A stretch of 64,000 bases of DNA from Eutreptiella sp. 'Long Island Sound 2002' (taxonomy: Eukaryota > Protista > Euglenida), in the NCBI GenBank assembly GCA_964036045.1, contig OZ038379.1, positions 76,818,001 to 76,882,000 of the forward strand, written 5' to 3'. Every line of letters begins with the position of its first letter. The stretch's first letter is position 1. The notes under the pieces are model-generated. The model did not search any database and had not been told where the DNA came from. It worked only from the letters and a program-made list of their open reading frames with translations. This document shows, one piece after another, positions 9,201 to 47,625 of the stretch. Both the position numbers and the translations under genes were made by a program.

Positions 9201-12200
9201 TGTCATGAGCCATTCGCTGCGTACCAAGAGCAATGCACCGTGTGTACAGAGTGGTCCACTGCGTGACCAAGGCAAACACACTGTGTGTCTCGAGGAATTC
9301 AGTGCACGACAAGAGCAAATACACCGTCGTCTTGAGGGATTCGCTGCACAACCACATAAAAATACACCGTGTGTCCCGAGCAAAGAACCGCATGTCTAGA
9401 GGAAGATAGCCGTGTGTCATGAGCAATCCACTACCTGACCGGAGCAATCCAATGCACCACCAGAGCAAATACATCGTATGCTTTGAGCAATGCACTCCAT
9501 CTCAAGAGCAAATACATCACGTGTCCAGACCATTTCACTGCATGTCTAGAGCAAATACACCGTGTGTCCTGACCAATGCACTGCCTGTCCAGAGTAAATA
9601 CAACGTGTCTCCTTAGGTATTCGCCGCATGTCTAGAGGGAATACACCCTGTGCCCCTGTGTCTTGAGCCATTCACTGCATCTCCAAAGCGAATACACCAT
9701 GTGTCCTCAGCATTCCCTTGCATGACCAGAGGGAATACACTCTGTCTTCTTAGCAGTTTCCTGCATGTCTAGACCGAATACACCGTGTTTCTTGTGGCTC
9801 GTGAGCAATTCAGTTCATGCCTAGACCAAATATGCCGTGTGTCTTGAGAAACTTATTGCATGACCACAGCAAACACACTGTGTGTTTTGAGCAATTCACA
9901 GCATGTCGAGAGCACATACACCATGTGTCTTGACCATTTCCTTGCAGGTAGAGAGCAAATACACCGCGTGGCCTGAGGGTTTCACAGCATGTCTAGAGCA
10001 AATACACGGTGAGTCTTGCGCGGTTCATTGCATGTGGAGCACAAACACACCGCGCGTCTAGAGTGTTTCTCGGCATGTTCACAGCAAACACATCGCGTGT
10101 CTTGAGCAACTCGCTGCGTTACAAGAGCAAATGCACGTTCGTCAAGAGCATTTCACTGCATGTCTTACGCAAATACACCGTGTGTCATGAGCCATTCGCT
10201 GCGTACCAAGAGCAATGCACCGTGTGTACAGAGTGGTCCGCTGCGTGACCAAGGCAAACACAATGTGTGTCTCGAGGAATTCAGTGCACGACAAGAGCAA
10301 ATACACCGTCGTCTTGAGGGATTCGCTGCATAACCACACAAAAATACACTGTGTGTCCCGAGCAAAGAACCGCACGTCTGGAGGAAGATAGCCGTGTGTC
10401 ATGAGCAATCCACTACCTGACCGGAGCAATCCAATGCACCACCAGAGCAAATACACTGTATGCTTTGAGCAATGCACTCCATCTCAAGAGCAAATACATC
10501 ACGTGTCCAGACCATTTCACTGCATGTCTAGAGCAAATACACCGTGTGTCCTGACCAATGCACTGCCTGTCTAGAGTAAATACAACGTGTCTCCTTAGGA
10601 ATTCGCCGCATGTCTAGAGGGAATACACCCTGTGCCCCTGTGTCTTGAGCCATTCACTGCATCTCCAAAGCGAATACACCATGTGTCCTCAGCATTCCCT
10701 TGCATGACCAGAGGGAATACACTCTGTCTTCTTAGCAATTTCCTGCATGTCTAGACCGAATACACCGTGTTTCTTGTGGCTCCTGAGCAATGCAGTTCAT
10801 GCCTAGACCAAATATGCTGTGTGTCTTGAGAAACTTATTGCATGACCACAGCAAATACACTGTGTGTTTTGAGCAATTCACAGCATGTCGAGAGCACATA
10901 CACCATGTGTCTTGACCATTTCCTTGCAGGTAGAGAGCAAATACACCGCCCGGCCTGAGAGTTTCATAGCATGTCTAGAGCAAATACACGGTGAGTCTTG
11001 CGCGGTTCATTGCATGTGGAGCACAAATACACCGCGCGTCTAGAGTGTTTCTCGGCATGTTCACAGCAAACACATCGCGTGTCTTGAGCAACTCGCTGCG
11101 TTACAAGAGCAAATGCATGTTCGTCAAGAGCATTTCACTGCATGTCGAGAGCAAATACACCGTGTGTCATGAGCCATTCGCTGCGTACCAAGAGCAATGC
11201 ACCGTGTGTACAGAGTGGTCCGCTGCGTGACCAAGGCAAACACAATGTGTGTCTCGAGCAATTCAGTGCACGACAAGAGCAAATACACCGTCGTCTTGAG
11301 GGATTCGCTGCACAACCACATAAAAATACACCGTGTGTCCCGAGCAAAGAACCGCATGTCTAGAGGAAGATAGCCGTGTGTCATGAGCAATCCACTACCT
11401 GACCGGAGCAATTCAATGCACCACCAGAGCAAATACATCGTATGCTTTGAGCAATGCACTCCATCTCAAGAGCAAATACATCACGTGTCCAGACCATTTC
11501 ACTGCATGTCTAGAGCAAATACACCGTGTGTCCTGACCAATGCACTGCCTGTCCAGAGTAAATACAACGTGTCTCCTTAGGAATTCGCCGCATGTCTAGA
11601 GGGAATACACCCTGTGCCCCTGTGTCTTGAGCCATTCACTGCATCTCCAAAGCGAATACACCATGTGTCCTCAGCATTCCCTTGCATGACCAGAGGGAAT
11701 ACACTCTGTCTTCTTAGCAGTTTCCTGCATGTCTAGACCGAATACACCGTGTTTCTTGTGGCTCGTGAGCAATTCAGTTCATGCCTAGACCAAATATGCC
11801 GTGTGTCTTGAGAAACTTATTGCATGACCACAGCAAACACACTGCGTGTTTTGAGCAATTCACAGCATGTCGAGAGCACATACACCATGTGTCTTGACCA
11901 TTTCCTTGCAGGTAGAGAGCAAATACACCGCGTGGCCTGAGGGTTTCACAGCATGTCTAGAGCAAATACACGGTGAGTCTTGCGCGGTTCATTGCATGTG
12001 GAGCACAAATACACCGCGCGTCTAGAGTGTTTCTCGGCATGTTCACAGCAAACACATCGCGTGTCTTGAGCAACTCGCTGCGTTACAAGAGCAAATGCAC
12101 GTTCGTCAAGAGCATTTCACTGCATGTCTTACGCAAATACACCGTGTGTCATGAGCCATTCGCTGCGTACCAAGAGCAATGCACCGTGTGTACAGAGTGG

Positions 12201-15200
12201 TCCGCTGCGTGACCAAGGCAAACACAATGTGTGTCTCGAGGAATTCAGTGCACGACAAGAGCAAATACACCGTCGTCTTGAGGGATTCGCTGCATAACCA
12301 CACAAAAATACACTGTGTGTCCCGAGCAAAGAACCGCACGTCTAGAGGAAGATAGCCGTGTGTCATGAGCAATCCACTACCTGACCGGAGCAATTCAATG
12401 AACCACGAGAGCAAATACACTGTATGCTTTGAGCAATGCACTCCATCTCAAGAGCAAATACATCACGTGTCCAGACCATTTCACTGCATGTCTAGAGCAA
12501 ATACACCGTGTGTCCTGACAAATGCACTGCCTGTCCAGAGTAAATACAACGTGTCTCCTTAGGAATTCGCCGCATGTCTAGAGGGAATACACCCTGTGCC
12601 CCTGTGTCTTGAGCCATTCACTGCATCTCCAAAGCGAATACACCATGTGTCCTCAGCATTCCCTTGCATGACCAGAGGGAATACACTCTGTCTTCTTAGC
12701 AATTTCCTGCATGTCTAGACCGAATACACCGTGTTTCTTGTGGCTCCTGAGCAATGCAGTTCATGCCTAGACCAAATATGCTGTGTGTCTTGAGAAACTT
12801 ATTGCATGACCACAGCAAATACACTGTGTGTTTTGAGCAATTCACAGCATGTCGAGAGCACATACACCATGTGTCTTGACCATTTCCTTGCAGGTAGAGA
12901 GCAAATACACCGCCCGGCCTGAGAGTTTCACAGCATGTCTAGAGCAAATACACGGTGAGTCTTGCGCGGTTCATTGCATGTGGAGCACAAATACACCGCG
13001 CGTCTAGAGTGTTTCTCGGCATGTTCACAGCAAACACATCGCGTGTCTTGAGCAACTCGCTGCGTTACAAGAGCAAATGCATGTTCGTCAAGAGCATTTC
13101 ACTGCATGTCGAGAGCAAATACACCGTGTGTCATGAGCCATTCGCTGCGTACCAAGAGCAATGCACCGTGTGTACAGAGTGGTCCGCTGCGTGACCAAGG
13201 CAAACACAATGTGTGTCTCGAGCAATTCAGTGCACGACAAGAGCAAATACACCGTCGTCTTGAGGGATTCGCTGCACAACCACATAAAAATACACCGTGT
13301 GTCCCGAGCAAAGAACCGCATGTCTAGAGGAAGATAGCCGTGTGTCATGAGCAATCCACTACCTGACCGGAGCAATTCAATGCACCACCAGAGCAAATAC
13401 ATCGTATGCTTTGAGCCATGCACTCCATCTCAAGAGCAAATACATCACGTGTCCAGACCATTTCACTGCATGTCTAGAGCAAATACACCGTGTGTCCTGA
13501 CCAATGCACTGCCTGCCAGAGTAAATACAACGTGTCTCCTTAGGAATTCGCCGCATGTCTAGAGGGAATACACCCTGTGCCCGTGTGTCTTGAGCCATTC
13601 ACTGCATCTCCAAAGCGAATACACCATGTGATCTCAGCATTCCCTTGCATGACCAGAGGGAATACACTCTGTCTTCTTAGCAATTTCCTGCATGTCTAGA
13701 CCGAATACACCGTGTTTCTTGTGGCTCGTGAGCAATTCAGTTCATGCCTAGACCAAAGATGCCGTGTGTCTTGAGAAGCTTATTGCATGACCACAGCAAA
13801 CACACTGTGTGTTTTGAGCAATTCACAGCATGTCGAGAGCACATACACCGTGTGTCTTGACCATTTCCTTGCAGGTAGAGAGCAAATACACCGCCCGGCC
13901 TGAGAGTTTCACAGCATGTCTAGAGCAAATACACGGTGAGTCTTGCGCGGTTCATTGCATGTGGAGCACAAATACACCGCGCGTCTAGAGTGTTTCTCGG
14001 CATGTTCCCAGCAAACACATCGCGTGTCTTGAGCAACTCGCTGCGTTACAAGAGCAAATGCACGTTCGTCAAGAGCATTTCACTGCATGTCGAGAGCAAA
14101 TACACCGTGTGTCATGAGCCATTCGCTGCGTACCAAGAGCAATGCACCGTGTGTACAGAGTGGTCCGCTGCGTGACCAAGGCGAACACAATGTGTGTCTC
14201 GAGCAATTCAGTGCACGACAAGAGCACATACACCGTCGTCTTGAGGGATTCGCTGCACAACCACATAAAAATACACCGTGTGTCCCGAGCAAAGAACCGC
14301 ATGTCTAGAGGAAGATAGCCGTGTGTCATGAGCAATCCACTACCTGACCGGAGCAATTCAATGCACCACCAGAGCAAATACATCGTATGCTTTGAGCAAT
14401 GCACTCCATCTCAAGAGCAAATACATCACGTGTCCAGACCATTTCACTGCATGTCTAGAGCAAATACACCGTGTGTCCTGACCAATGCACTGCCTGCCCA
14501 GAGTAAATACAACGTGTCTCCTTAGGAATTCGCCGCATGTCTAGAGGGAATACACCCTGTGCCCCTGTGTCTTGAGCCATTCACTGCATCTCCAAAGCGA
14601 ATACACCATGTGTCCTCAGCATTCCCTTGCATGACCAGAGGGAATACACTCTGTCTTCTTAGCAATTTCCTGCATGTCTAGACCGAATACACCGTGTTTC
14701 TTGTGGCTCGTGAGCAATTCAGTTCATGCCTAGACCAAACATGCCGTGTGTCTTGAGAAACTTATTGCATGACCACAGCAAACACACTGTGTGTTTTGAG
14801 TAATTCACAGCATGTCGAGAGCACATACACCGTGTGTCTTGACCATTTCCTTGCAGGTAGAGAGCAAATACACCGCGTGGCCTGAGAGTTTCACAGCATG
14901 TCTAGAGCAAATACACGGTGAGTCTTGCGCGGTTCATTGCATGTGGAGCACAAATACACCGCGCGTCTAGAGTGTTTCTCGGCATGTTCACAGCAAACAC
15001 ATCGCGTGTCTTGAGCAACTCGCTGCGTTACAAGAGCAAATGCACATTCGTCAAGAGCATTTCACTGCATGTCGAGAGCAAATACACCGTGTGTCATGAG
15101 CCATTCGTTGCGTACCAAGAGCAATGCACCGTGTGTACAGAGTGGTCCACTGCGTGACCAAGGCAAACACACTGTGTGTCTCGAGCAATTCAGTGCACAA

Positions 15201-31487: not shown

Positions 31488-33134
31488 CCTCACCAGCGAC
31501 CGGGCCAATAATGTAACACCATATTAAACGAGAAACCAGTGCACTTGCAAAATGCAGCTTAGAAAGCATTGCGTTGACAAGCAAGGCTGCTCCATCCAAT
31601 CGCGGTGTCCAGCTACGTGACAACATGTAGCAATCATCAGTATCTACACGCAATGATGCCGCAAACATCATTAAAATCAATGACACGATGTACCCACAAA
31701 AGACATTATCGTTGGATGTCTGCATGGATTGGCCACAAGCCCCCAAACTACCCTGGGATGATCTCGGTCCCCAAGAAAACACCGATACCCGCACTCTTGT
31801 GGAGATGTGAGTGCGAGACCCCCAAAAAGGGGCCATGATGCCCCGGACACCAACAGCCTTAGGGACTTCCGCTCCACTGGCCAAAAGTGTGAACCCTGGT
31901 GGACTGTACCGACGGGCCAAAATGCCGCAAACAACCTCCGGAAGATCTCTGTCACCAACACACAACTAAAATACTGCGAAGACGAGCCATGATGCCCTAG
32001 TGGCTGCTCGAGGCCCCACTGGGCGCTAGTAGGCAGAAACGACTCTTGGCACTTGATAAACCACCAATGACAATACTCAACTTCGCCATTGATCATGGCT
32101 TGCAGTACCACCACTACACATCAAGTGCGAGAAAACAAACTATAGGACGCGAGCAAGCATGACACCCCAATCTACCACAATTGACCATTAATCACCCTCG
32201 ATCGTTGAACTACACATGACGAACATGTCATGCCGAACCTTAACTCAAATTGGCTCCCCCTGAATGCATATTGTACACCACACGACTATTTTGGCTTGCT
32301 TGGGCATCCTTGGGGGGGCGCATTTCACACTTGGTCTGGCAGTTGTGCGTTTGCCTCGTCTGGATCCCACCGTTCCCGGGAGGAGAACCCGACTATCGCG
32401 TGTCCCGGTGCTACGGGCCAACTTAGGCCCATCCGAGGTGATACTTGTGGTGGGGGAGGGGGGGGGAATTGCATAAGCCTCCACAATATGCCCGTCCCCA
32501 TGAGGTGCCGCCAGGAGTTGTTTCTACCGCATACGTGTGCCACGACTCTTGCATTTCGAACTTCTTCTTAACTGATCCGTCAAGTGTGGCATCGTAGTAT
32601 GCTGGGCCACTATTACAATGGGATGACGGTGTGCAGAAAGGTGGCTCTATGATCTGCATTAGATAACCATAGGGGCTTAGGTTGAAAGCACAATTCCCCA
32701 GGGGCCCGTATAACAGGCCTGTTAAAAACACCGCCCACGGACCCTTGTGGGCAGGTGGGCAGCAGTTTGATAAAAGGGTGTTTTTTTCCCGTTTTTCGGC
32801 TTTTTTTTGTGGTTTTTCTGAGGAAAATATTGTTTTTGTCCTTCACTATGACCTCAAATGCATTTTCCAAGACATTTAAAAGGTTTTTTAAATGTTCATA
32901 GCATGGTGTCACTCAACAGCTCAACCAATCAACAACACAAACCAGAAAAAAACCACTGTGTTGCAGCTCGGTTGCTTCGGCCTTGTGACCTGAAGTGGCG
33001 TTTTCCCACCATTTTCAATTGTTAGTTTGTTGTGTGCTGCTACTTTGGCATTGAAATATTCATGTATCACGGAAGTCAGGGTGTTTTTTAGGTGGGTTTG
33101 CCCAAGGAGTGCCGGCTGAACGTTATCATGTAGC

Positions 33135-36100
33135 TCACTGTTATTTCCGTCTGCGTTATTATTTCCTGTTGTGCTCTCGATGGTCACTATTATTTCCTGG
33201 TGTGCTCTCGATGGTCACTGTTATTTCCTGGGGTGCTCTGGATGGTGACTGTTATTTCCTAGTGTGCCCTGGATGGTCACTGTTATTTCCTCGTGTGCCC
33301 TGGATGGTCACTGTTATTTCCTAGTGTGCTCTTGATGGTCACTGTTATTTCCTGGTGTGCTGTGGATGGTCACTGTTATTTCCTGGTGTGCCCTGGATGG
33401 TCACTGTTGTTTCCTGGTGTGCTCTGGATGGTCACTGTTATTTCCTGGTGTGCCCTGGATGGTCACTGTTATTTCCTGGTGTGCCTTGGATGGTCAATGA
33501 TATTTCCTGGTGTGCTCTGGATGGTCACTGTTATTTCTTGGTGTGCCCTGGATGGTCACTGTTATTTCCTGGTGTGCCCTGGATGGTCACTGTTATTTCA
33601 TGGTGTGCCCTGAATGGTCACTGTTATTTCCTTGTGTGCCCTGGATGGTCACTGTTATTTCCTGGTGTGCCCTGGATGGTCATTGTTATTTCCAGGTGTG
33701 CCCTGGATGGTCACTGTTATTTCCTCGTGTGCCCTGGATGGTCACTGTTATTTCCTGGTGTGCTGTGGACGGTCACTGTTATTTCCTGGTGTGCCCTGGA
33801 TGATCACTGTTATTTCCTGGTGTGCTGTGGATGGTCGCTGTTATTTCTTGGTGTGCTGTGGATGGTCACTGTTATTTCCTGGTGTGCTGTGGATGGTCAC
33901 TGTTATTTCCTGGTGTGCTGTGGATGGTCACTGTTATTTCCTGGTGTGCTGTTGATGGTGACTGTTATTTCCTGGGGTGCCCTGGATGGTCACTGTTATT
34001 TCCTGGTGTGCCCTGAATGGTCACTGTTATTTCCTGGTGGACCCTGAATGGTCACTGTTAGTTCCTAGTGTGCCCTAGATGGTCACTGTTATTTCGTGGT
34101 GTGCCCTGGATGGTCACTTTGATTTCCTGTTTGCCCTGGATGGTCAATGTTATTTCCTGGTGTGCCCTGGATGGTCACTGTTATTTCCTGGTGTGCCCTG
34201 GATGGTCATTGTTATTTCCTGGTGTGCCCTGGATGGTCACTGTTATTTCCTTGTGTGCCCTGAATGGTCACTGTTATTTCCTGGTGTGCCCTGAATGGTC
34301 ACTGTTATTTCGTGGTGTGCCCTGAATGGTCACTGTTATTTCGTGGTGTGCCCTGAATGGTCACTGTTATTTCATGGTGTGCCCTGGATGGTCACTGTTA
34401 TTTCCTGGTGTGCCCTGGATGGTCGCTGTTATTTCCTGGTGTGCCCTGGATGGTCACTGTTATTTCCTGGTGTGCTCTAGATGGTCACTGTTATTTCTTG
34501 GTGTGCTGTGGATGGTCACTGTTACTTCCTGGTGTGCTGTGGATGGTCACTGTTATTTCCTGGTGTGCCTTGGATGGTCACTGTTATTTCCTTGTGTGCC
34601 CTGGATGGTCACTGTTATTTCCTGGTGTGCCCTGGAGGGTCACTGTTATTTCCTGGTGTGCCCTGGATGGTCACTGTTATTTCCTGGTGTGCCCTGGATG
34701 GTCACTGTTATTTCCTGGTGTGCCCTGGATGGTCACTGTTATTTCCTGGTGTGCCCTGGATGGTCACTGTTATTTCCTGGTGTGCCCTGGATGGTCACTG
34801 TTATTTCTTGGTGTGCTGTGGATGGTCACTGTTACTTCCTGGTGTGCTGTGGATGGTCACTGTTATTTCCTGGTGTGCCCTGGATGGTCACTGTTATTTC
34901 CTGGTGTGCTGTGGATGGTCACTGTTATTTCCTGGTGTGCTCTGGATGGTCACTGTTATTTCTTGGTGTGCCCTGGATGGTCACTGTTATTTCCTTGTGT
35001 GCCCTGGATGGTCACTGTTATTTCCTGGTGTGCCTTGGATGGTCACTGTTATTTCCTTGTGTGCCCTGGATGGTCACTGTTATTTCCTGGTGTGCCCTGG
35101 AGGGTCACTGTTATTTCCTGGTGTGCCCTGGATGGTCACTGTTATTTCCTGGTGTGCCCTGGATGGTCACTGTTATTTCCTGGTGTGCCCTGGATGGTCA
35201 CTGTTATTTCTTGGTGTGCCCTGGATGGTCACTGTTACTTCCTGGTGTGCCCTGGATGGTCACTGTTTTTTCTTGGTGTGCTCTGGATGTTCACTGTTAT
35301 TTCCTGGTGTGCCCTGGATGGTCACTGTTATTTCCTGGTGTGCCCTGGATGGTCACTGTTATTTCCTGGTGTGCTGTGGATGGTCACTGTTATTTCCTGT
35401 GGTGCCCTGGATGGTCACTGTTATTTCCTGGTGTGCCCTGAATGGTCACTGTTATTTCCTGGTGTGCCCTGGATGGTCACTGTTATTTCCTGGTGTGCCC
35501 TGAATGGTCACTGTTATTTCCTGGTGTGCCCTGATTGGTCACTGTTATTTCTTGGTGTGCCCTGAATGGTCACTGTTATTTCCTGGTGTGCCCTGAATGG
35601 TCACTGTTATTTCCTGGTGTGCCCTGATTGGTCACTGTTATTTCTTGGTGTGCCCTGGATGGTCACTGTTATTTCCTGGTGTGCTTTGGATGGTCACTGT
35701 TATTTCCTGGTGTGCCCTGGATGGTCACTGTTATTTCCTGGTGTGCTTTGGATGGTCACTGTTATTTCCTGGTGTGCTCTGGATGGTCACTGTTATTTCC
35801 TGGTGTGCCTTGATTGGTCGCTGTTATTTCCTGGTGTGCCGTGAATGGTCACTGTTATTTCATGGTGTGCCCTGGATGGTCACTGTTACTTCCTGGGGTG
35901 CTCTGGATGGTTACTGTTATTTCCTAGTGTGCCCTGAATGGTCGCTGTTATTTCCTGGTGTGCCGTGAATGGTCACTATTATTTCCTGGTGTGCTCTCGA
36001 TGGTCACTGTTGTTTCCTGGGGTGCTCTGGATGGTGACTGTTATTTCCTAGTGTGCCCTGCATGGTCACTGTTATTTCCTGGTGTGCCCTGGATGGTCAC

Positions 36101-39100
36101 TGTTATTTCCTGGTGTGCTGTGGATGGTCACTGTTATTTCCTGGTGTGCCCTGGATGGTCACTGTTGTTTTCTGGTGTGCTCTGGATGGTCACTGTTATT
36201 TCCTGCTGTGCCCTGGATGGTCACTGTTATTTCCTGGTGTGCCCTGGATGGTCAATGTTATTTCCTGGTGTGCTTTGGATGGTCAGTGTTATTTCCTGGT
36301 GTGCCCTGGATGGTCACTGTTATTTCCTGCTGTGCCCTGGATGGTCACTGTTATTTCCTGGTGTGCCCTGGATGGTCACTGTTATTTCCTGGTGTGCTCT
36401 GGATGGTCACTGTTATTTCCGTGTGTGCCCTGGATGGTCACTGTTATTTCGTGGTGTGCCCTGGATGGTCATTGTTATTTCCTGGTGTGCCCTGGATGGT
36501 CACTGTTATTTCGTGGTGTGCCCTGGATGGTCACTGTTATTTCCTGGTGTGCCCTGGATGGTCACTGTTATTTCCTGGTTCGCCCTGGATGATCACTGTT
36601 ATTTCCTGGTGTGCCCTGGATGGTCTATGTTATTTCTTGGTGTGCTGTGGATGGTCACTGTTATTTCCTGGTGTGCTGTGGATGGTCACTGTTATTTCCT
36701 GCTGTGCCCTGAATGGTCACTGTTATTTCCTGGTGTGCTGTTGATGGTCACTGTTATTTCCTCGGGTGCCCTGGATGGTCACTGTTATTTCCTGGTGGAC
36801 CCTGAATGGTCACTGTTATTTCCTAGTGTGCCCTAGATGGTCACTGTTATTTCCTGGTGTGCCCTGGATGGTCACTGTTATTTCCTGTGTGCCCTGGATG
36901 GTCACTGTTATTTCCTGGTGTGCTCTGGATGGTCAATGTTATTTCCTGGTGTGCTGTGGATGATCACTGTTATTTCCTGCTGTGCCCTGAATGGTCACTG
37001 TTATTTCCTGGTGTGCTGTTGATGGTCACTGTTATTTCCTCGGGTGCCCTGGATGGTCACTGTTATTTCCTGGTGGACCCTGAATGGTCACTGTTATTTC
37101 CTAGTGTGCCCTAGATGGTCACTGTTATTTCCTGGTGTGCCCTGGATGGTCACTGTTATTTCCTGTGTGCCCTGGATGGTCACTGTTATTTCCTGGTGTG
37201 CCTTGGATGGTCACTGTTATTTCGTGGTGTGCCCTGGATGGTCACTGTTATTTCCTGGTGTGCTCTGGATGGTCAATGTTATTTCCTCGTGTGCCCTGGA
37301 GGGTCACTGTTATTTCGTGGTGTGCCCTGGATGGTCACTGTTATTTCCTTGTGTGCCCTCAATGGTCCCTGTTATTTCCTGGTGTGCCCTGAATGGTCAC
37401 TGTTATTTCCTGGTGGCCCTGATTGGTCACTGTTATTTCTTGGTGTGCCCTGGATGGTCACTGTTATTTCCTGGTGTGCCCTGGATGGTCACTGTTATTT
37501 CCTGGTGTGCCTTGGATGGTCACTGTTATTTCCTGGTGTGCCCTGGATGGTCACTGTTGTTTCCTGGTGTGCTCTGGATGGTCACTGTTATTTCCTGGTG
37601 TGCCCTGGATGGTCACTGTTATTTCGTGGTGTGCCCTGAATGGTCACTGTTATTTCATGGTGTGCCCTGGATGGTCACTGTTATTTCCTAGTGTGCCCTG
37701 GATGGTCACTGTTATTTCCTGGTGTGCCCTGGATGGTCACTGTTATTTCCTGGTGTGCCCTGGATGGTCACTGTTATTTCTTGGTGTGCTGTGGATGGTC
37801 ACTGTTATTTCCTGGTGTGCCCTGGATGGTCACTGTTATTTCCTGGTGTGCCCTGGATGGTCACTGTTATTTCCTGGTGTGCCCTGGATGATCATTGTTA
37901 TTTCCTGGTGTGCCCTGGATGGTCACTGTTATTTCTTGGTGTGCTGTGGATGGTCACTGTTATTTCCTGGTGTGCTGTGGATGGTCACTGTTATTTCCTT
38001 GTGTGCCCCGGATGGTCACTGTTATTTCGTGGTGTGCTGTGGATGGTCACTGTTATTTCCTGGGGTGCCCTGGATGGTCACTGTTATTTCCTGATGTGCT
38101 GTGGATGGTCGCTGTTATTTCCTAGTGTGCCCTGAATGGTCACTGTTATTTCCTGGTGTGCCCTGGATGGTCACTGTTATTTCCTGGTGTGCCCTGATTG
38201 GTCACTGTTATTTCTTGGTGTGCCCTGGATGGTCACTGTTATTTCCTGGTGTGGTTTGGATGGTCACTGTTATTTCCTGTGTGCCCTGGATGGTCACTGT
38301 TATTTCCTGGTGTGCTCTAGATGGTCAATGTTATTTCCTGGTGTGCCCTGGATGGTCACTGTTATTTCCTGGTGTGCTGTGGATGGTCACTGTTATTTCC
38401 TGGTGTGCCATGGATGGTCGCTATTATTTCCTGGTGTGCCCTGAATGGTCACTGTTTTTTCCTGGTGTGCCCTGAATGGTCACTGTTGTTTCCTGGTGTG
38501 CCCTGATTGGTCACTGTTATTTCTTGGTGTGCCCTGGATGGTCACTGTTATTTCCTGGTGTGCCCTGGATGGTCACTGTTATTTTCTGGTGTGCCCTGGA
38601 TGGTCACTGTTATTTCCTGGTGTGCCTTGGATGGTCACTGTTATTTCCTGGTGTGCTCTGGATGGTCACTCTCATTTCCTGGTGTGCCCTGGATGGTCAC
38701 TATTATTTCCTGGTGTGCCCTGAATGGTCACTGTTATTTCCTGGTGTGCCCTGGATGGTCACTGCTATTTCCTAGTGTGCCGTGGATGGTCACTGTTATT
38801 TCCTGGTGTGCCATGGATGGTCATTGTTATTTCCTGGTGTGCCCTGGATGGTCACTGTTGTTTCCTGGTGTGCTCTAGATGGTCACTGTTATTTCTTGGT
38901 GTGCCCTGAATGGTCACTGTTATTTCCTGGGGTGCCCTGGATGATCACTGTTATTTCCTGGTGTGCCCTGGATGGTCACCGTTATTTCTTGGTGTGCTGT
39001 GGATGGTCACTGTTATTTCCTGGTGTGCTGTGGATGGTCACTGTTATTTCCTGGTGTGCCCTGAATGGTCACTGTTATTTCCTGGTGTGCTGTGGATGGT

Positions 39101-42100
39101 CACTGTTATTTCGTGGTGTGCCCTGGATGGTCACTGTTATTTCTTGGTGTGCCATGGATGGTCATTGTTATTTCCTTGTCTGCCCTGGATGGTCACTGTT
39201 ATTTCGTGGTGTGCCCTGGATGGTCACTGTTATTTCCTGGTGTGCCCTGGATGGTCACTGTTATTTCCTGGTGTGCCCTGGATGATCACTGTTATTTCCT
39301 GGTGTGCCCTGGATGATCACTGTTATTTCCTGGTGTGCCCTGGATGGTCACTGTTATTTCTTGGTGTGCTCTGGATGGTCACTGTTATTTCCTGGTGTGC
39401 TGTGGATGGTCACTGTTATTTCCTGGTGTGCCCTGGATGGTCACTGTTATTTCCTGGTGTGCTGTGGATGGTCACTGTTATTTCCTGGGGTGCCCTGGAT
39501 GGTCACTGTTATTTCCTGGTGTGCCCCGAATGGTCACTGTTATTTCCTAGTGTGCCCTGGATGGTCACTGTTATTTACTGGTGTGCCCTGGATGGTCACG
39601 GTTATTTCATGTGTGCCCTGGATGGTCGCTGTTATTTCCTGGTGTGCTCTGGATGGTCACTTTTATTTCCTGTGTGCCCTGGATGGTCAATGTTATTTCC
39701 TGGTGTGCTCTGGATGGTCACTTTTATTTCCTCGTGTGCCCTGGATGGTCACTGTTATTTCCTGGTGTGCCCTGGATGGTCACTGTTATTTCATGGTGTG
39801 CCCTGATTGGTCACTGTTATTTCTTGGTGTGCCCTGGATGGTCACTGTTATTTCCTGGTGTGTCCTGGATGGTCACTGTTATTTCCTGGTGTGCCCTGGA
39901 TGGTCACTGTTATTTCCTAGTGTGCCCTGGATGGTCACTGTTATTTCCTGGTGTGTCCTGGATGGTAACTGTTATTTCCTGGTGTGCTATGGATGGTCAC
40001 TGTTATTTCATGGTGTGCCCTGGATGGTCACTGTTGTTTGCTGGTGTGCCCTGAATGGTCACTGTTATTTCATGGTGTGCTCTGGATGGTCACTGTTATT
40101 TCATGGTGTGCCCTGGATGGTCACTGTTATTTCCTGGTGTGCCCTGGATGGTCACTATTATTTCCTGGTGTGCCCTGGATGGTCACTGTTATTTCCTGGT
40201 GTGCCCTGGATGGTAACTGTTATTTCCTGGTGTGCTCTGGATGGTCACTGTTATTTCCTGGTGTGCCCTGAATGGTCACTGTTATTTCCTGGTGTGCCCT
40301 GAATGGTCACTGTTATTTCATGGTTTGCCCTGGATGGTCACTGTTATTTCCTAGTGTGCCCTGGATGGTCATTGTTATTTCCTGGTGTGCTTTGGATGGT
40401 CACTGTTATTTCCTGGTGTGCCGTGAATGGTCACTGTTATTTCCTGGTGTGCCGTGAATGGTCACTGTTATTTCATGGTGTGCCCTGGATGGTCACTGTT
40501 ATTTCCTAGTGTGCCCTGGATGGTCACTTTTATTTCCTGGTGTGCTCTGGATGGTCACTGTTATTTCCTGGTATGCCCTAGATGGTCACTGTTATTTCCT
40601 GGTGTGCTCTGGATGGTCACTGTTATTTCTTGGTGTGCCCTGGATGGTCACTGTTATTTCCTGGTGTGCCCTGGATGGTCACTGTTATTTCCTTGTGTGC
40701 TGTGGATGGTCACTGTTATTTCCTGGTGTGCTTTGGATGGTCACTGTTATTTCCTGGTGTGCCCTAGATGGTCACTGTTATTTCCTGGTGTGCCCTGGAT
40801 GGTCACTGTTATTTCGTGGTGTGCCCTGAATGGTCACTGTTATTTCCTGGTGTGTCCTGGATGGTCACTGTTATTTCCTGGTGTGCCCTGGATGGTCACT
40901 GTTCTTTCCTGGTGTGCCCTGGATGGTCACTGTTATTTCCTTGTGTGCCCTGGATGGTCACTGTTATTTCCTGGTGTGCTGTGGATGGTCACTGTTATTT
41001 CCTGGTGTGCCCTGAATGGTCACTGTTATTTCATGGTGTGCCCTGGATGGTCACTGTTATTTCCTAGTGTGCCTTCGATGGTCACTGTTATTTCCTGGTG
41101 TGCTTTGGATGGTCACTGTTATTTCCTGGTGTGCCCTGAATGGTCACTGTTATTTCCTGGTGTGCCGTGAATGGTCACTGTTATTTCATGGTGTGCCCTG
41201 GATGGTCACTGTTATTTCCTGGTGTGCCCTGGATGGTCACTGTTATTTCCTGGTATGCCCTAGATGGTCACTGTGATTTCCTGGTGTGCTCTGGATGGTC
41301 ACTGTTATTTCTTGGTGTGCCCTGGATGGTCACTGTTATTTCCTGGTGTGCCCTGGATGGTCACTATTATTTCCTGGTGTGCCCTGGATGGTCACTGTTA
41401 TTTCCTAGTGTGCTTTGGATGGTCACTGTTATTTCCTGGTGTGCCCTGGATGGTCACTGTTATTTCCTGGTTTGCCCTGGATGGTCACTGTTATTTCGTG
41501 GTGTGCCTTGAATGGTCACTGTTATTTCCTGGTGTGTCCTGGATGGTCACTGTTATTTCCTGGTGTGCCCTGGATGGTCACTGTTCTTTCCTGGTGTGCC
41601 CTGGATGGTCACTGTTATTTCCTGGTGTGCTCTGGATGGTCACTGTTATTTCCTTGTGTGCCATGGATGGTCACTGTTATTTCCTGGTGTGCTGTGGATG
41701 GTCACTGTTTTTTCTTGGTGTGCGCTGGATGGTCACTGTTATTTCCTGGTGTGCTGTGGATGATCATTGTTATTTCCTGGTGTGCTCTGGATGGTCACTG
41801 TTATTTCTTGGTGTGCCCTGGATGGTCACTGTTATTTCCTTGTGTGCCCTGGATGGTCACTGTTATTTCCTGGTGTGCCCTGGATGGTCACTGTTATTTC
41901 CTTGTGTGCCCTGGATGGTCAGTGTTATTTCCTGGTGTGCCCTGGATGGTCACTGTTATTTCCTGGTGTGCCCCGGATGGTCACTGTTATTTCCTGGTGT
42001 GCCCTGGATGGTCACTGTTATTTCCTGGTGTGCCCCGGATGGTCAGTGTTATTTCTTGGTGTGCTGTGGATGGTCACTGTTATTTCCTGGTGTGCTGTGG

Positions 42101-44410
42101 ATGGTCACTGTTATTTCCTGGTGTGCCCTGGATGGTCACTGTTATTTCCTGGTGTGCTGTGGATGGTCACTGTTATTTCCTGGGGTGCCCTGGATGGTCA
42201 CTGTTATTTCCTGGTGTGCCCTGAATGGTCACTGTTATTTCCTGGTGGGCCCTGAATGGTCACTGTTATTTCCTAGTGTGCCCTAGATGGTCACTGTTAT
42301 TTCCTGGTGTGCTGTGGATGGTCACTGTTATTTCATGGTGTGCCCTGGATGGTCGCTGTTATTTCCTGGTGTGCTCTGGATGGTCAATGTTATTTCCTGG
42401 TGTGGTCTGGATGGTCACTTTTATTTCCTCGTGTGCCCTGGATGGTCACTGTTATTTCCTGGTGTGCCCTGGATGGTCACTGTTATTTCCTGGTGTGACC
42501 TGAATGGTCACTGTTATTTCCTAGTGTGCCCTGGATGGTCACTGTTATTTCCTGGTGTGCCCTGATTGGTCACTGTTATTTCTTGGTGTGCCCTGGATGG
42601 TCACTGTTATTTCCTGGTGTGCCCTGGATGGTCACTGTTATTTCCTGGTGTGCCCTGGATGGTCACTGTTATTTCCTGGTGTGCCCTGGATGGTCAATGT
42701 TATTTCCTGGTGTGCTCTGGATGGTCACTGTTATTTCCTGGTGTGCCCTGGATGGTCACTGTTATTTCCTGGTGTGCTCTGGATGGTCACTGTTATTTCC
42801 TAGTGTGCCCTGGATGGTCACTGTTATTTCCTGGGGTGCCCTGGATGGTCACTGTTATTTCCTTGTGTGCCCTGGATGGTCACTGTTATTTCCTGGTGTG
42901 CCCTGGATGGTCACTGTTATTTCCTGGTGTGCTGTTGATGGTCACTGTTATTTCCTGGTGTGCCCTGAATGGTCACTGTTATTTCCTGGTGTGCCCTGAA
43001 TGGTCACTGTTATTTCCTGGTGTGCCCTGAATGGTCACTGTTATTTCCTAGTGTGCCCTGGATGGTCACTGTTATTTCCTGGTGTGCTTTGGATGGTCAC
43101 TGTTATTTCCTGGTGTGCCCTGAATGGTCACTGTTATTTCCAGGTGTGCCGTGAATGGTCACTGTTATTTCATGGTGTGCCCTGGATGGTCACTGTTATT
43201 TCCTAGTGTGCCCTGGATGGTCACTGTTATTTCCTGGTGTGCTTTGGATGGTCACTGTTATTTCCTGGTGTGCCCTGGATGGTCACTGTTATTTCCAGGT
43301 GTGCCGTGAATGGTCACTGTTATTTCATGGTGTGCCCTGGATGGTCACTGTTATTTCCTAGTGTGCCCTGGATGGTCACTGTTATTTCCTGGTGTGCCGT
43401 GAATGGTCGCTGTTATTTCATGGTGTGCCCTGGATGGTCACTGTTATTTCCTGGTGTGCCCTGGATGGTCAATGTTATTTCCTGGTGTGCCCTGGATGGT
43501 CACTGTTATTTCCTGGTGTGCCCTAGATGGTCCCTGTTATTTCCTGGTGTGCTCTGGATGGTCACTGTTCTTTCTTGGTGTGCCCTGGATGGTCAGTGTT
43601 ATTTCCTGGTGTGCCCTAAATGGTCACTGTTATTTCCTGGTGTCCGTGGATGGTCACTGTTTTTTCCTGGTGTGCTTTGGATGGTCACTGTTATTTCCTG
43701 GTGTGCCCTGGATGGTCGCTGTTATTTCCTGGTGTGCCCTGGATGGTCACTGTTATTTCGTGGTGTGCCCTGAATGGTCACTGTTATTTCCTGGTGTGTC
43801 TTGGATGGTCACTGTTATTTCCTGGTGTGCCCTGGATGGTCACTGTTCTTTCCTGGTGTGCCCTGGATGGTCACTGTTATTTCCTGGTGTGCTCTGGATG
43901 GTCACCGTTATTTCTTGGTGTGCCCTGGATGGTCACTGTTATTTCCTGGTGTGCCCTGGATGGTCACTGTTATTTCCTGGTGTGCCCTGGATGGTCACTG
44001 TTATTTCCTCGTGTGCTGTGGATGGTCACTGTTATTTCCTGGTGTGCCCTCGATGGTCACTGTTATTTCCTGGTGCACCCTGGATGGTCACTGTTATTTC
44101 CTGGTGTGCTCTGGATGGTCATTGTTATTTCGTGGTGTGCCCTGGATGGTCACTGTTATTTCCTGGTGTGCCCTGGATGGTCACTGTTATTTCCTGGTGT
44201 GCCCTGAATGGTCACTGTTATTTCATGGTGTGCCCTGGATGGTCACTGTTATTTCCTGGTGTGCTCTGGATGGTCACTGTTATTTCCTGGTGTGCTCTGG
44301 ATGGTCACTGTTATTTCCTGGTGTGCTCTGGATGGCCACTGTTATTTCCTGGTGTGCCCTGGATGGTCGCTGTTATTTATTGGTGTGCTCCCGATGGTCA
44401 CCGTTGTTCC
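33135..44410 (+). repeat. 31-bp satellite, consensus GGATGGTCACTGTTATTTCCTGGTGTGCCCT, ~364 copies
   Basis: Continuous 31-bp periodicity over ~11.3 kb. The consensus has no stop codon on the + strand, which explains the repeated 31-aa ORF MVTVISWCALDGHCYFLVCPGWSLLFPGVPW. Confidence 0.98.
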
Positions 44411-44743
44411 CTGCTTCGTGCACAAGCAAAACAAGTCACGCCATACAAACACAAAGCAAAGCATGGAAATTGAAGAAGTGACGGCCCCGTATGGGCTGTA
44501 CATACCACCGGAACTCATCATGTGACCTCAGTATGCCGAACATTGCTGCATATGCGTAAAAGGACATGCATGTGTGGAGCGCTGCTTGCCCTGTGTGCGC
44601 CCCCCCCCCGTCTCACTATTGCTAAGCATTCGCCTGCATCCACCACCAATGCACCTGCAGTCCACCTTCGTTCCACGTCCACCCCCGCCGCCATCTCAGC
44701 ACGTGATGCAGTCCATGTACGGTGCAATCATTAGGTGTCCAAC

Positions 44744-45090
44744 AGCAACTGTGGGGTTCTAGCGTTACCCCTTTCGCATCCAACACAAATGACAAAGCAT
44801 CCTAGCCCCTTTATGGGCGTGGGGCAGACACAGGAATTGTGGGGTTCTAGCGTTGCCCCCTTCACATCCGACACAAACAACAAAGCATCCTAGCCCCTTT
44901 ATGGGCGTGGGGCAGACACAGGAATTGTGGGGTTCTAGCGTTGCCCCCTTCGCATCCAACACAAACAACAAAGCATCCTAGCCCCTTTATGGGCGTGGGG
45001 CAGAGACAGCAACTGTGGGGTTCTAGCGTTGCCCCCTTCGCATCCAACGCAAACCACAAAGCATCCTAGCCCCTTTATGGGCGTGGGGCA
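44744..45090 (+). repeat. 88-bp tandem repeat (~4 copies) in the right arm of the hAT-like element
   Basis: gtggggttctagcg at 44751, 44839, 44927 and 45015. Confidence 0.95.
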
Positions 45091-46894
45091 TGCACACGTG
45101 ATATGCAATGCCATGTAAACACACGATGAATACACATGTTACATGGAACCTGCAACAGAAGAAAGAAAGACGTGGGGTGGGACGGACACTAAGCAAGACC
45201 ATGAAGACAGCGCAGGTAAGCTGATGAACCTTTTCAAACCGGTGCCAAATGCGAACGAAAAACAACAATTTTGTCAAATTGTGAAAACTCTAGTTTTCAA
45301 CAAATGCCGGAAAAGATGGCACATGCGCAAAAACAGTCAAAAAACACTAAAAAACACCGAAAAACGCGGGAACCGGGGGAAAAACGGGGGGGGGGGGGGA
45401 ACCAAAAAAACAGCGTTTTTTTTCATTTGACTACGTGGCGGGGCACCAATTAGCACAGGCCTGCCGTATAATGTCACTCTTCAAATTTGTCTGCGTATCT
45501 TCCTCATCAATCTTCAAATTGATCGTTCATAATGTCAGCATCTACCAATGCCTGGATGAGGGGTAGCTTGGGGGAGGCATTTTGATGTGCCATGTCGCCG
45601 TGAAAAAATCCTTGACAATACACACAGAAAAAAAAAGATGTGTTTATGTCTGTACGCATGCGACAAGACAAACCTAGGGGCGACGGACATATGTCCGTGG
45701 TAACCGTGGACAGCCTCCTCCGTTTGGCATTGCCCTTGCTGTAGGGCAAGGGGCGGCAGGACGATATGGGTGATGCCATGGCCTGGGTGAGGCAGCTCAC
45801 TTGGGTTTTGGTTTCGGCTGTTGGTTACCACGAACCATCTGAGATAGGGTGTGTGTGTGTCTGGGCTCAGCCGAAGGCGCCGCGTCAAAGGTGGATGGAC
45901 AGGTGGGGGTAGTCGTGCGGGGCAGGGGTGCCCTGGCAGCAGCCAGGTCCGTTGGCGGGTGGAGAGACGTACTGGTAGTAAAGAGCATCGCCGGTGTGCC
46001 ATGAGCGCACACTATCCAGCAACCCTGGAAGGGCACTTTGATATTGGGTGGACGAGCCATTAGTTTGCGAAGCAACGGCATGGGCAAGCAGCCTTGTGGT
46101 AGGGAGGAAAGGTGTTAGCTAGGTGCCACTTCTTGCATAGTAGCCTAGAAATGGCGCGGCTCATCATGGCGGCCGTTGTACCCCGTCAACGGCGCCTCAC
46201 TATTTTCCACTAGCCTGTACACAGGCACACCTGCCTGTCCGGTGAGACAGCATAGGAAGAGCCAGCGACTGCTAAATCCTTGGGGAGATAGGATCGGTGG
46301 TCTTTGGAAGGAGGGGTGTTTCAACATTGGCTGCGACGATCTTCGGCCGGGGGCTGTGCGCGGGGGGTGGATGAGTGCGAGCAGACCGTAGGATGGTGAT
46401 GCGGGGGTTGGAGGCGTGGGCGGGGGTGTCACAATGGGCTCCCAAGGCGAGGGCTGGGCAAGCCAAAACGGCTGCAGCTCTGGTACCTCCCACTCGTACC
46501 CGTAGTCACAAAGGGCACTATCGAATATCGATGACATGATAGGGCTCAACAAAGGGGGTATTTCAGAGTTGTTTGCACATGCTTGAACCAACCAAAGCCT
46601 TCAACTATGGACAAATCAGTCGACAAAACCATGCAGCATGGTTCCATCATTTCTACAGCATGTGGTGTAACAGCACAAGGACGGTGCCACCTTCAACTAT
46701 TTGTAGCTGCCGAAGGCGGCACATTGACACGTGTAAGCGGCTTTGAGCGCTTACAGGGACGAAATGGCCTACTCCCATGTCGCCCCGTGGATGGCGATTG
46801 CTGTTTAGGGGGTTTGCAAGGGCCCGGTACCATACATTCAAAGTGAGGCTGACGTGCCCATCTAGACTTGGTATTTCCGACATTGAAGCGCGCG

Positions 46895-47625
46895 CTTCAA
46901 ACAACCCGAGGAAATGAGGGGAGGCCGTCAAAGTGACACATTGCCAGACTAATTTGTGTAAGCGGAGACAATAGCGGCTGAAAGGAATGGTGGGGAAAAA
47001 AACCGCTGCTATCCGGCATTTGGGCTTTCTTGTTAGTGTGAAAAAATGTGGCCGCAGGGTCTACACAGTGCCCCACTACGCGCACCTAACCCCGACTTGG
47101 GGGGGAAACCCCCGTTGTGACTAATGTACACCCGGGCCGGTGTATGGCTCTCCTACGACCTTCCCAACATGGCGTACAAACATTTCGCTGTGGTCGGATT
47201 TGGTATGCGGATCTAATGGGACATGCGCCGCACGCACCACGCCACGAGTTACTGCACAAGCATAGAAACACAACCGGACAAAGGAAGAAGCCAAGCTGCA
47301 AACTGAATGTACGATACAATTTCATGTTCCTAATACATCAATTCTCGAGCGCTCATCACGGCAAAGCTCATCCTCACCTTGAGCATCCCTTGGCATTGGC
47401 ATAAGAGTGCAAGGCTCGGAAAGCTGGGGGGGAAAGTCATCACGACAACACACCTGTTCTGTCGGTATAAACTCACTGGCACTCAACGGAGGACCGCCTT
47501 GCTAGACTGCAGACAACCCGAGGAAACGAGGGGAGCCCATCACAAGGACAGATTTTCAGGCTAATTTGTTGAAGCGGAGATGATAGCGGCTGAAAACAAT
47601 AGTGGGCGGAAAAAATGTTTGAAAA
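46895..47625 (+). repeat. Dispersed ~120-bp direct repeat pair (~46900-47020 and ~47512-47625)
   Basis: Both copies read acaacccgaggaaa..gagggg..ctaatttgt..aagcggaga..atagcggctgaaa. Confidence 0.75.

Follow-up and report, generated by a model that had tools for sequence, protein, structure and literature searches.

We analysed a 64,000-nucleotide stretch of the Eutreptiella sp. 'Long Island Sound 2002' genome (contig OZ038379.1, positions 76,818,001 to 76,882,000; hereafter the window), in which 12,750 bp at positions 32714-45463 are framed by a direct 8-bp repeat and consist largely of one 31-bp tandem repeat. These 12,750 bp are very probably one complete copy, non-autonomous and with an internal deletion, of a cut-and-paste transposon family that is moderately repeated and most likely belongs to the hAT superfamily; in this copy a native array has expanded. 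The plan of the family is a left arm, a 31-bp minisatellite, an internal region, an 88-bp minisatellite and a right arm. The parts of the window copy are listed here by position in the window, with other copies of the family named as described below.

32706-32713, unstranded: left target-site duplication (TSD) CCGTATAA, an exact 8-bp match to 45464-45471
32714-33158, + strand: left arm, 445 bp, with the terminal inverted repeat (TIR) CAGGCCTGT and five subterminal GTTTTT motifs; 90-97% identical to L002, L003, L004 and L009
33159-44413, + strand: 31-bp tandem array, consensus TTATTTCCTGGTGTGCCCTGGATGGTCACTG; 363.3 copies and 91% matches by Tandem Repeats Finder (TRF)
44414-44472, + strand: conserved junction segment, 59 bp, 95% identical to the segment in L002 and L003
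44473-44740, + strand: copy-specific filler, 268 bp, which replaces the family's internal region of 1.2-2.2 kb
44742-45090, + strand: 88-bp tandem array, 4.0 units (TRF, 94% matches), at a read depth of ~280x single copy
45091-45463, + strand: right terminal region with seven inverted GTTTTT motifs and the TIR (45455-45463); 87-94% identical to L002, L003, L004, L009 and L010, and 88-93% over the terminal ~260 bp
45464-45471, unstranded: right TSD CCGTATAA, an exact 8-bp match to 32706-32713

An earlier note on this DNA had proposed a frame of TSDs and TIRs around the 12,750 bp, and this frame was borne out. The two TSD sites are the only places in the window where the octamer CCGTATAA is found (chance expectation 0.40), and the 9-bp TIR CAGGCCTGT lies directly inside the duplications, at 32714-32722 on the + strand and at 45455-45463 on the - strand. 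Because CAGGCCTG, an octamer within the TIR, is identical to its own reverse complement, the evidence that the ends are inverted comes down to the ninth base (T) and to partial matches beyond it; when compared by eye, 15 of the first 23 bases of the two ends match in inverted orientation. The GTTTTT motifs are also inverted between the arms, with five on the left and, read inward, seven on the right, in each case within 220 bp; the background frequency, both strands counted, is 1.3 per kb. They are kept in other copies of the family and are presumed to be transposase-binding sites. In one of these copies, L003, the two ends carry an identical G-to-C change. No second copy of an arm was found within the 64-kb window, and an Rfam search with the right arm gave nothing above chance. 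Terminal sequences of the element are also present in estuary metagenomes; a degenerate pattern for both termini retrieved a single chance match from metagenomes, on a bacterial-looking contig.

The 31-bp array spans 11.3 kb, or 88% of the element. TRF and a unit-by-unit walk agreed with the earlier description of a satellite of ~11.3 kb and ~364 copies accompanied by an 88-bp array. The walk resolved 364 units falling into 140 distinct variants, with 8 one-base deletions. Units are on average 94.7% identical to the consensus (5.3% off), with a mean pairwise divergence of 9.1%, and the unit analysis detected no higher-order period, no gradient from edge to centre and a single local duplication of 9 units. 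The GCCCTGG variant, a minority form in short arrays of the family, dominates the window array, while the edge units retain the common GCTCTGG form.

The same locus is present in a second assembly version (ENA contig ctg10974_50x_l, our L008), where the element has the same TSD and a length of 12,629 bp. The two versions agree completely across 7 kb of left flank and, within the element, across the first 7.5 kb and the last 983 bp; all differences fall within 40215-44480, where ~25 units are changed and the net difference is 4 units. This discrepancy, which affects one third of the array, reflects either two haplotypes or two assembly/polishing versions. Because the long array is present in both assembly versions, it is not a one-off artefact.

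Further copies were found by searching a translated satellite open reading frame (ORF) against a protein collection and fetching the DNA around the matches. All matches came from one ENA assembly (ERZ25074135), which represents the same genome, as the window's own locus is in it. The ORFs of the window's own array were missing from the match list although they are in the collection, so the list is not a census of copies. The loci obtained are as follows.

Window copy: 12,750 bp; TSD CCGTATAA, exact; 363 units of the 31-bp repeat; 88-bp repeat, 4 units
L002: 3,624 bp; TSD CACTGCAC, exact; 14.3 units; 161-bp repeat, 5.6 units
L003: 3,381 bp; TSD ATCGCGAA / ATCGCTAA; 17.5 units; 88-bp repeat, 8 units
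L004: 2,256 bp; TSD TACTCCCG / GACTCCCG; 10.3 units
L009: 5,304 bp; TSD TCAATGTG, exact; ~104 units
L010: truncated, left end lost; ~92 units
L005: ~2.5 kb (9823-12278); TSD matching at 5 of 8 bases, in register; 11.5 degraded units; older subfamily, arms 78% identical
L011: 2,897 bp (~9470-12370); TSD CGAGCTCA, exact; 0 units; related family with 14-bp ends CAGGGGTCTTACAA
L012: 0 units; diverged relative
L006: 8924-10360; 47 units of a variant 31-bp unit; no recognisable arms

The check proposed earlier, a search for loci at which the two arms occur together between distinct 8-bp TSDs, was positive for L002, L003, L004 and L009. In the window copy and these four complete copies the TSDs are 8 bp long and match exactly or at 7 of 8 bases; the left arms are 90-97% identical among copies and the terminal parts of the right arms 88-97%. 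Array length varies across the loci (10, 14, 17.5, 104 and 363 units), as had been anticipated for a family that seeds satellites, and the opposite case, a satellite found mostly without these arms, was not what we saw: six of the seven arrays examined are located inside family elements. The 31-bp repeat occupies the same position in L002, L003, L004, L005, L009, L010 and the window copy, and the arm/array junctions are the same to the base in the window copy, L002 and L003. Because the repeat, its position and its junctions with the arms are shared by all family copies examined, we take the 31-bp repeat to be native to the family and not captured cargo. In the related L011, no trace of the unit was found when up to 11 mismatches were allowed.

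The 31-bp array is one of three internal arrays, all of which differ in length between copies. In L003 the 88-bp repeat reaches 8.0 units, compared with about one in L002 and about four in L010. The third array has a 161-bp unit, each unit holding a (GTGACACA)n microsatellite; it is repeated 5.6 times in L002 (10854-11745), occurs about once in L003 and is absent from the window copy.

To the right of its 31-bp array, the window copy departs from the rest of the family. The conserved junction segment is followed by the filler, which matched neither another copy nor anything else in the 251 kb of fetched DNA; past 44472, reads of other copies run on with CACCGAT(A)n, the same continuation as in L002 and L003. 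Because the junction leads into filler instead of the internal sequence of 1.2-2.2 kb, the window copy is evidently an internally deleted derivative. It is closest to the L002 type (left arm 96.9% identical). Its arms lie 4.0-5.1% from a family consensus built on a small sample, which makes it one of the older copies of the family. Within the filler, a 50-bp piece (44534-44583) stands at ~2,000-6,000x single-copy depth under both organism labels and also occurs in an estuary metagenome; its copies have variable flanks, and most have CC where the window has AA (44559-44560). This piece had no Rfam match and no copy in the 251 kb of fetched loci.

We then used read depth to examine the right end. 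Public reads, in the form of assembled contigs, were placed on 44414-47400, and depths were taken from the two runs available for organism A. Beyond the element, from 45514 on, the flank has a depth of ~35-48, which corresponds to single copy. The last 250 bp of the element reach ~2,200-2,700 (roughly 60x single copy) and 44714-45213 reach ~10,000-12,000 (roughly 280x), the junction segment at 44414-44472 is at ~6x, and in the filler 44614-44713 has the depth of a single copy. The contigs at single-copy depth begin 18-30 bases inward of the right end, as contigs from 31-mer graphs do when the repeat boundary is at 45463/45464. A contig of the second organism label joins the last 60 bases of the element to another flank.

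The window copy has no coding capacity, and its movement would have required a transposase supplied in trans. Several sister copies contain an ORF between the 88-bp and 31-bp arrays, on the strand opposite to the element.

L004, 10772-11629, - strand: sister-copy ORF
L009, 10001-11065: sister-copy ORF
L010, 10001-10876: sister-copy ORF

The encoded proteins (P0039-P0075) are 286-422 amino acids long across the family. The ORF is multi-copy (one cluster at 90% identity has 30 members), and the ORF of L011 is 55% identical to it; MMETSP holds transcripts of a subfamily of the ORF with the same level of identity. The ratio of nonsynonymous to synonymous substitution rates (dN/dS) is 0.4-0.6 within subfamilies and 0.14-0.19 between them, the latter indicating purifying selection on the ORF between subfamilies. 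AlphaFold modelled the protein with a mean predicted local distance difference test score (pLDDT) of 52.5, and residues 1-60 alone, a 60-residue N-terminal domain, were confident. A cysteine-rich segment resembles a PHD finger, and a profile search of the PDB gave only weak matches to PHD fingers (Jade-1). Several members matched the Pfam zinc finger zf-C17orf113 (E values of 3.6e-6 to 9e-4, 19.5-27.2 bits). For residues 175-360 of P0070, the nearest Atlas cluster combines ZMYM1/FAM200/DUF4371 with zf-C17orf113 (score 0.92, 170 shared features), and the ten best Atlas matches all belong to one clan. The ZMYM1/FAM200/DUF4371 families and ZBED5-type proteins are derived from hAT transposases. 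The ORF ends at or just past SDSSTD; its tail, which gave no Pfam match, closes with SDSSTD..NKQELVY, a motif that may resemble the first of the catalytic blocks in hAT transposases. The ORF looks like the N-terminus of a truncated hAT transposase kept by selection, and in the copies that carry it the internal region is predicted to be the 5' third of a transposase gene oriented opposite to the element.

To judge when and where the array grew, we compared the long arrays with one another. The arrays of the window copy, L009 and L010 have few unit variants in common, and they share runs of identical consecutive units no more often than shuffled controls do; in both L009 and L010 there are private recent duplications of 16 to 29 units. 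The lack of a shared unit order, together with these private duplications, indicates that the long arrays expanded independently in different copies. In the window copy, a native array that typically has 10-17 units would have grown to ~364, and changes in length could have arisen by unequal exchange, by replication slippage or by template slippage during gap repair after excision. Because the divergence of the units (5.3%) is close to that of the arms from the family consensus (4.0-5.1%), most of the growth may date back roughly as far as the copy does, and the array may have decayed without homogenisation since then.

It could be argued that the 8-bp match is coincidental and that unrelated arms, or two different elements, happen to surround a pre-existing satellite. 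The palindrome CAGGCCTG means that an 8-bp inverted repeat is trivially obtained, and the region is rich in satellite DNA, with a 26-kb block of 43-bp satellite abutting the element. However, the same two arms with an array between them recur at at least four other loci, each with its own 8-bp TSD, and the arm/array junctions are kept to the base between copies. The recurring arms, their own TSDs and the conserved junctions rule out a chance TSD and a two-element composite, to which we assign almost no probability. Capture of a foreign satellite as Pack-type cargo was rejected as well, because the array is native and only the 268-bp filler is copy-specific. The earlier note had left open whether a transposon carried a satellite as cargo or a satellite expanded within an inserted element; the second part of this either/or, the element as a nursery of satellite DNA, agrees with the native repeat, the conserved junctions and the independent growth of long arrays, and the idea of a captured cargo was not upheld. 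A related alternative is that the array had already reached ~11 kb in a donor copy and that the whole 12.7-kb element then moved to the present site. The similarity of unit and arm divergence is compatible with such a move, since amplification is not clearly younger than insertion; the TSD and ends of the window copy are intact, and the 104-unit, 5.3-kb copy also has a perfect TSD. Nevertheless, our incomplete sample of copies contained no other locus with this array, and the other long arrays have an unrelated unit order and private variants. In addition, the short arrays are 5-7% heterogeneous among their units, so part of the 9% pairwise divergence would be inherited and is no sign of age. 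We consider this course, the transposition of an already long array, rather unlikely and favour either growth in place or early growth over it. Still more doubtful is a fuller version in which the 12.7-kb element moved with the array aboard and the N-terminal fragment of the sister copies is a selected DNA-binding protein that acts on the elements. If true, the family would breed minisatellites and also physically carry blocks of satellite DNA, kilobases in size, to other places on the chromosomes.

Turning to the superfamily, we regard hAT as the best assignment for this family and as a probable one, because of the 8-bp TSDs, the CAGG ends, the subterminal GTTTTT motifs and the N-terminal transposase fragment of the sister copies. 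Several observations weigh against parts of our interpretation. A DDE domain or a hAT C-terminal dimerisation domain was not found in the ~250 kb of fetched DNA, and the search for an autonomous hAT partner that had been proposed earlier recovered no full transposase from the same DNA. None of the Pfam zinc-finger scores reaches the curated threshold of 29.5 bits. At the termini, CAGGC agrees with the usual hAT start YARNG in only 4 of 5 bases, and our six TSDs, too few to be decisive, show little of the target preference nTnnnnAn of hAT elements (T2 in one of six, A7 in three of six). As for the array, the 47 variant units of L006 lie without recognisable arms, and our sample of copies, obtained through translated ORFs, is incomplete, such that unseen long arrays or a donor with the same array are possible. 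Since 8-bp TSDs and short ends also occur outside hAT and a hAT catalytic or dimerisation domain was not found in the fetched DNA, the family might instead belong to another superfamily with 8-bp TSDs (P, Mutator-like or Zisupton). This is improbable in view of the sole coding remnant, which is similar to ZMYM1/FAM200/ZBED5-type proteins over their zinc finger and their first RNase-H-like segment. The THAP domain, a hallmark of P elements, gave no match, and the ends of the related L011 (CAGGGGTCTTACAA) start with CAGGG, as classical hAT ends do, and fit YARNG (CAGNG/TAGNG) fully; those of L005 start with CAAGG. The hAT label of the earlier note is supported by indirect evidence: the 8-bp TSDs, short ends, motifs and zinc-finger fragment speak for it, and the failure to find a catalytic transposase in the fetched DNA speaks against it.

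That transposon-borne repeats can breed satellites is a principle well documented in both animals and plants. Satellites are seeded by MITE-type and other non-autonomous DNA transposons whose interior contains tandem repeats, among them miDNA4 of Xenopus tropicalis, Xmix/Xstir of Xenopus laevis, Tetris of Drosophila virilis and pearl/CvA of bivalves (reviewed in PMC9659126). Like these, the present family has a native tandem repeat within a non-autonomous element bounded by TIRs, and, as in miDNA4, Xstir, Tetris and pearl, the copy number varies among insertions with occasional strong expansion to satellite-like arrays. Unlike those systems, the family resides in a marine or estuarine protist, is hAT-like with three arrays (31, 88 and 161 bp) and has its expanded array still within intact ends and a TSD; the only candidate for a free array among the loci examined is the orphan 47-unit variant L006.

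Maize Ds elements are internal-deletion derivatives of Ac, a hAT transposon. The window copy resembles them in its 8-bp TSDs, short CAG ends and inverted subterminal motifs, and in an internal deletion with filler DNA and a transposase that would be supplied in trans; it differs in that the sister copies retain an N-terminal transposase fragment of 286-422 amino acids. A large non-transposase payload between functional-looking ends is also seen in Pack-type elements and macrotransposons, but here the payload is a native 31-bp repeat in all copies examined and not captured host DNA. The window copy offers a clean, fully bounded snapshot of satellite DNA arising from a transposon. Within one family the length of the array varies more than 30-fold, between 10 and 363 units, and the related family has none. 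For the annotation of a repeat-rich protist genome, these data suggest that satellite 'cargo' should rather be interpreted as an unstable component that belongs to the transposon itself.

Two of the other loci have features of their own. L005, whose ends read CAAGG.../...CTTG, is inserted in a long 49-bp satellite that resumes in register past the 8-bp duplication. The L006 array has a higher-order period of 152 bp and may be a freed or orphaned array.

The flanks of the window copy, when joined across the insertion site, contain only an open frame of 99 codons with no family match, for which an exact look-up and a search of a representative library were also without a match, and no disrupted gene was shown. 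A 43-bp satellite with a higher-order repeat of ~982 bp occupies ~26 kb to the left (window positions ~5100-31500) and ends ~1.2 kb from the element, which places the insertion at the edge of a satellite block.

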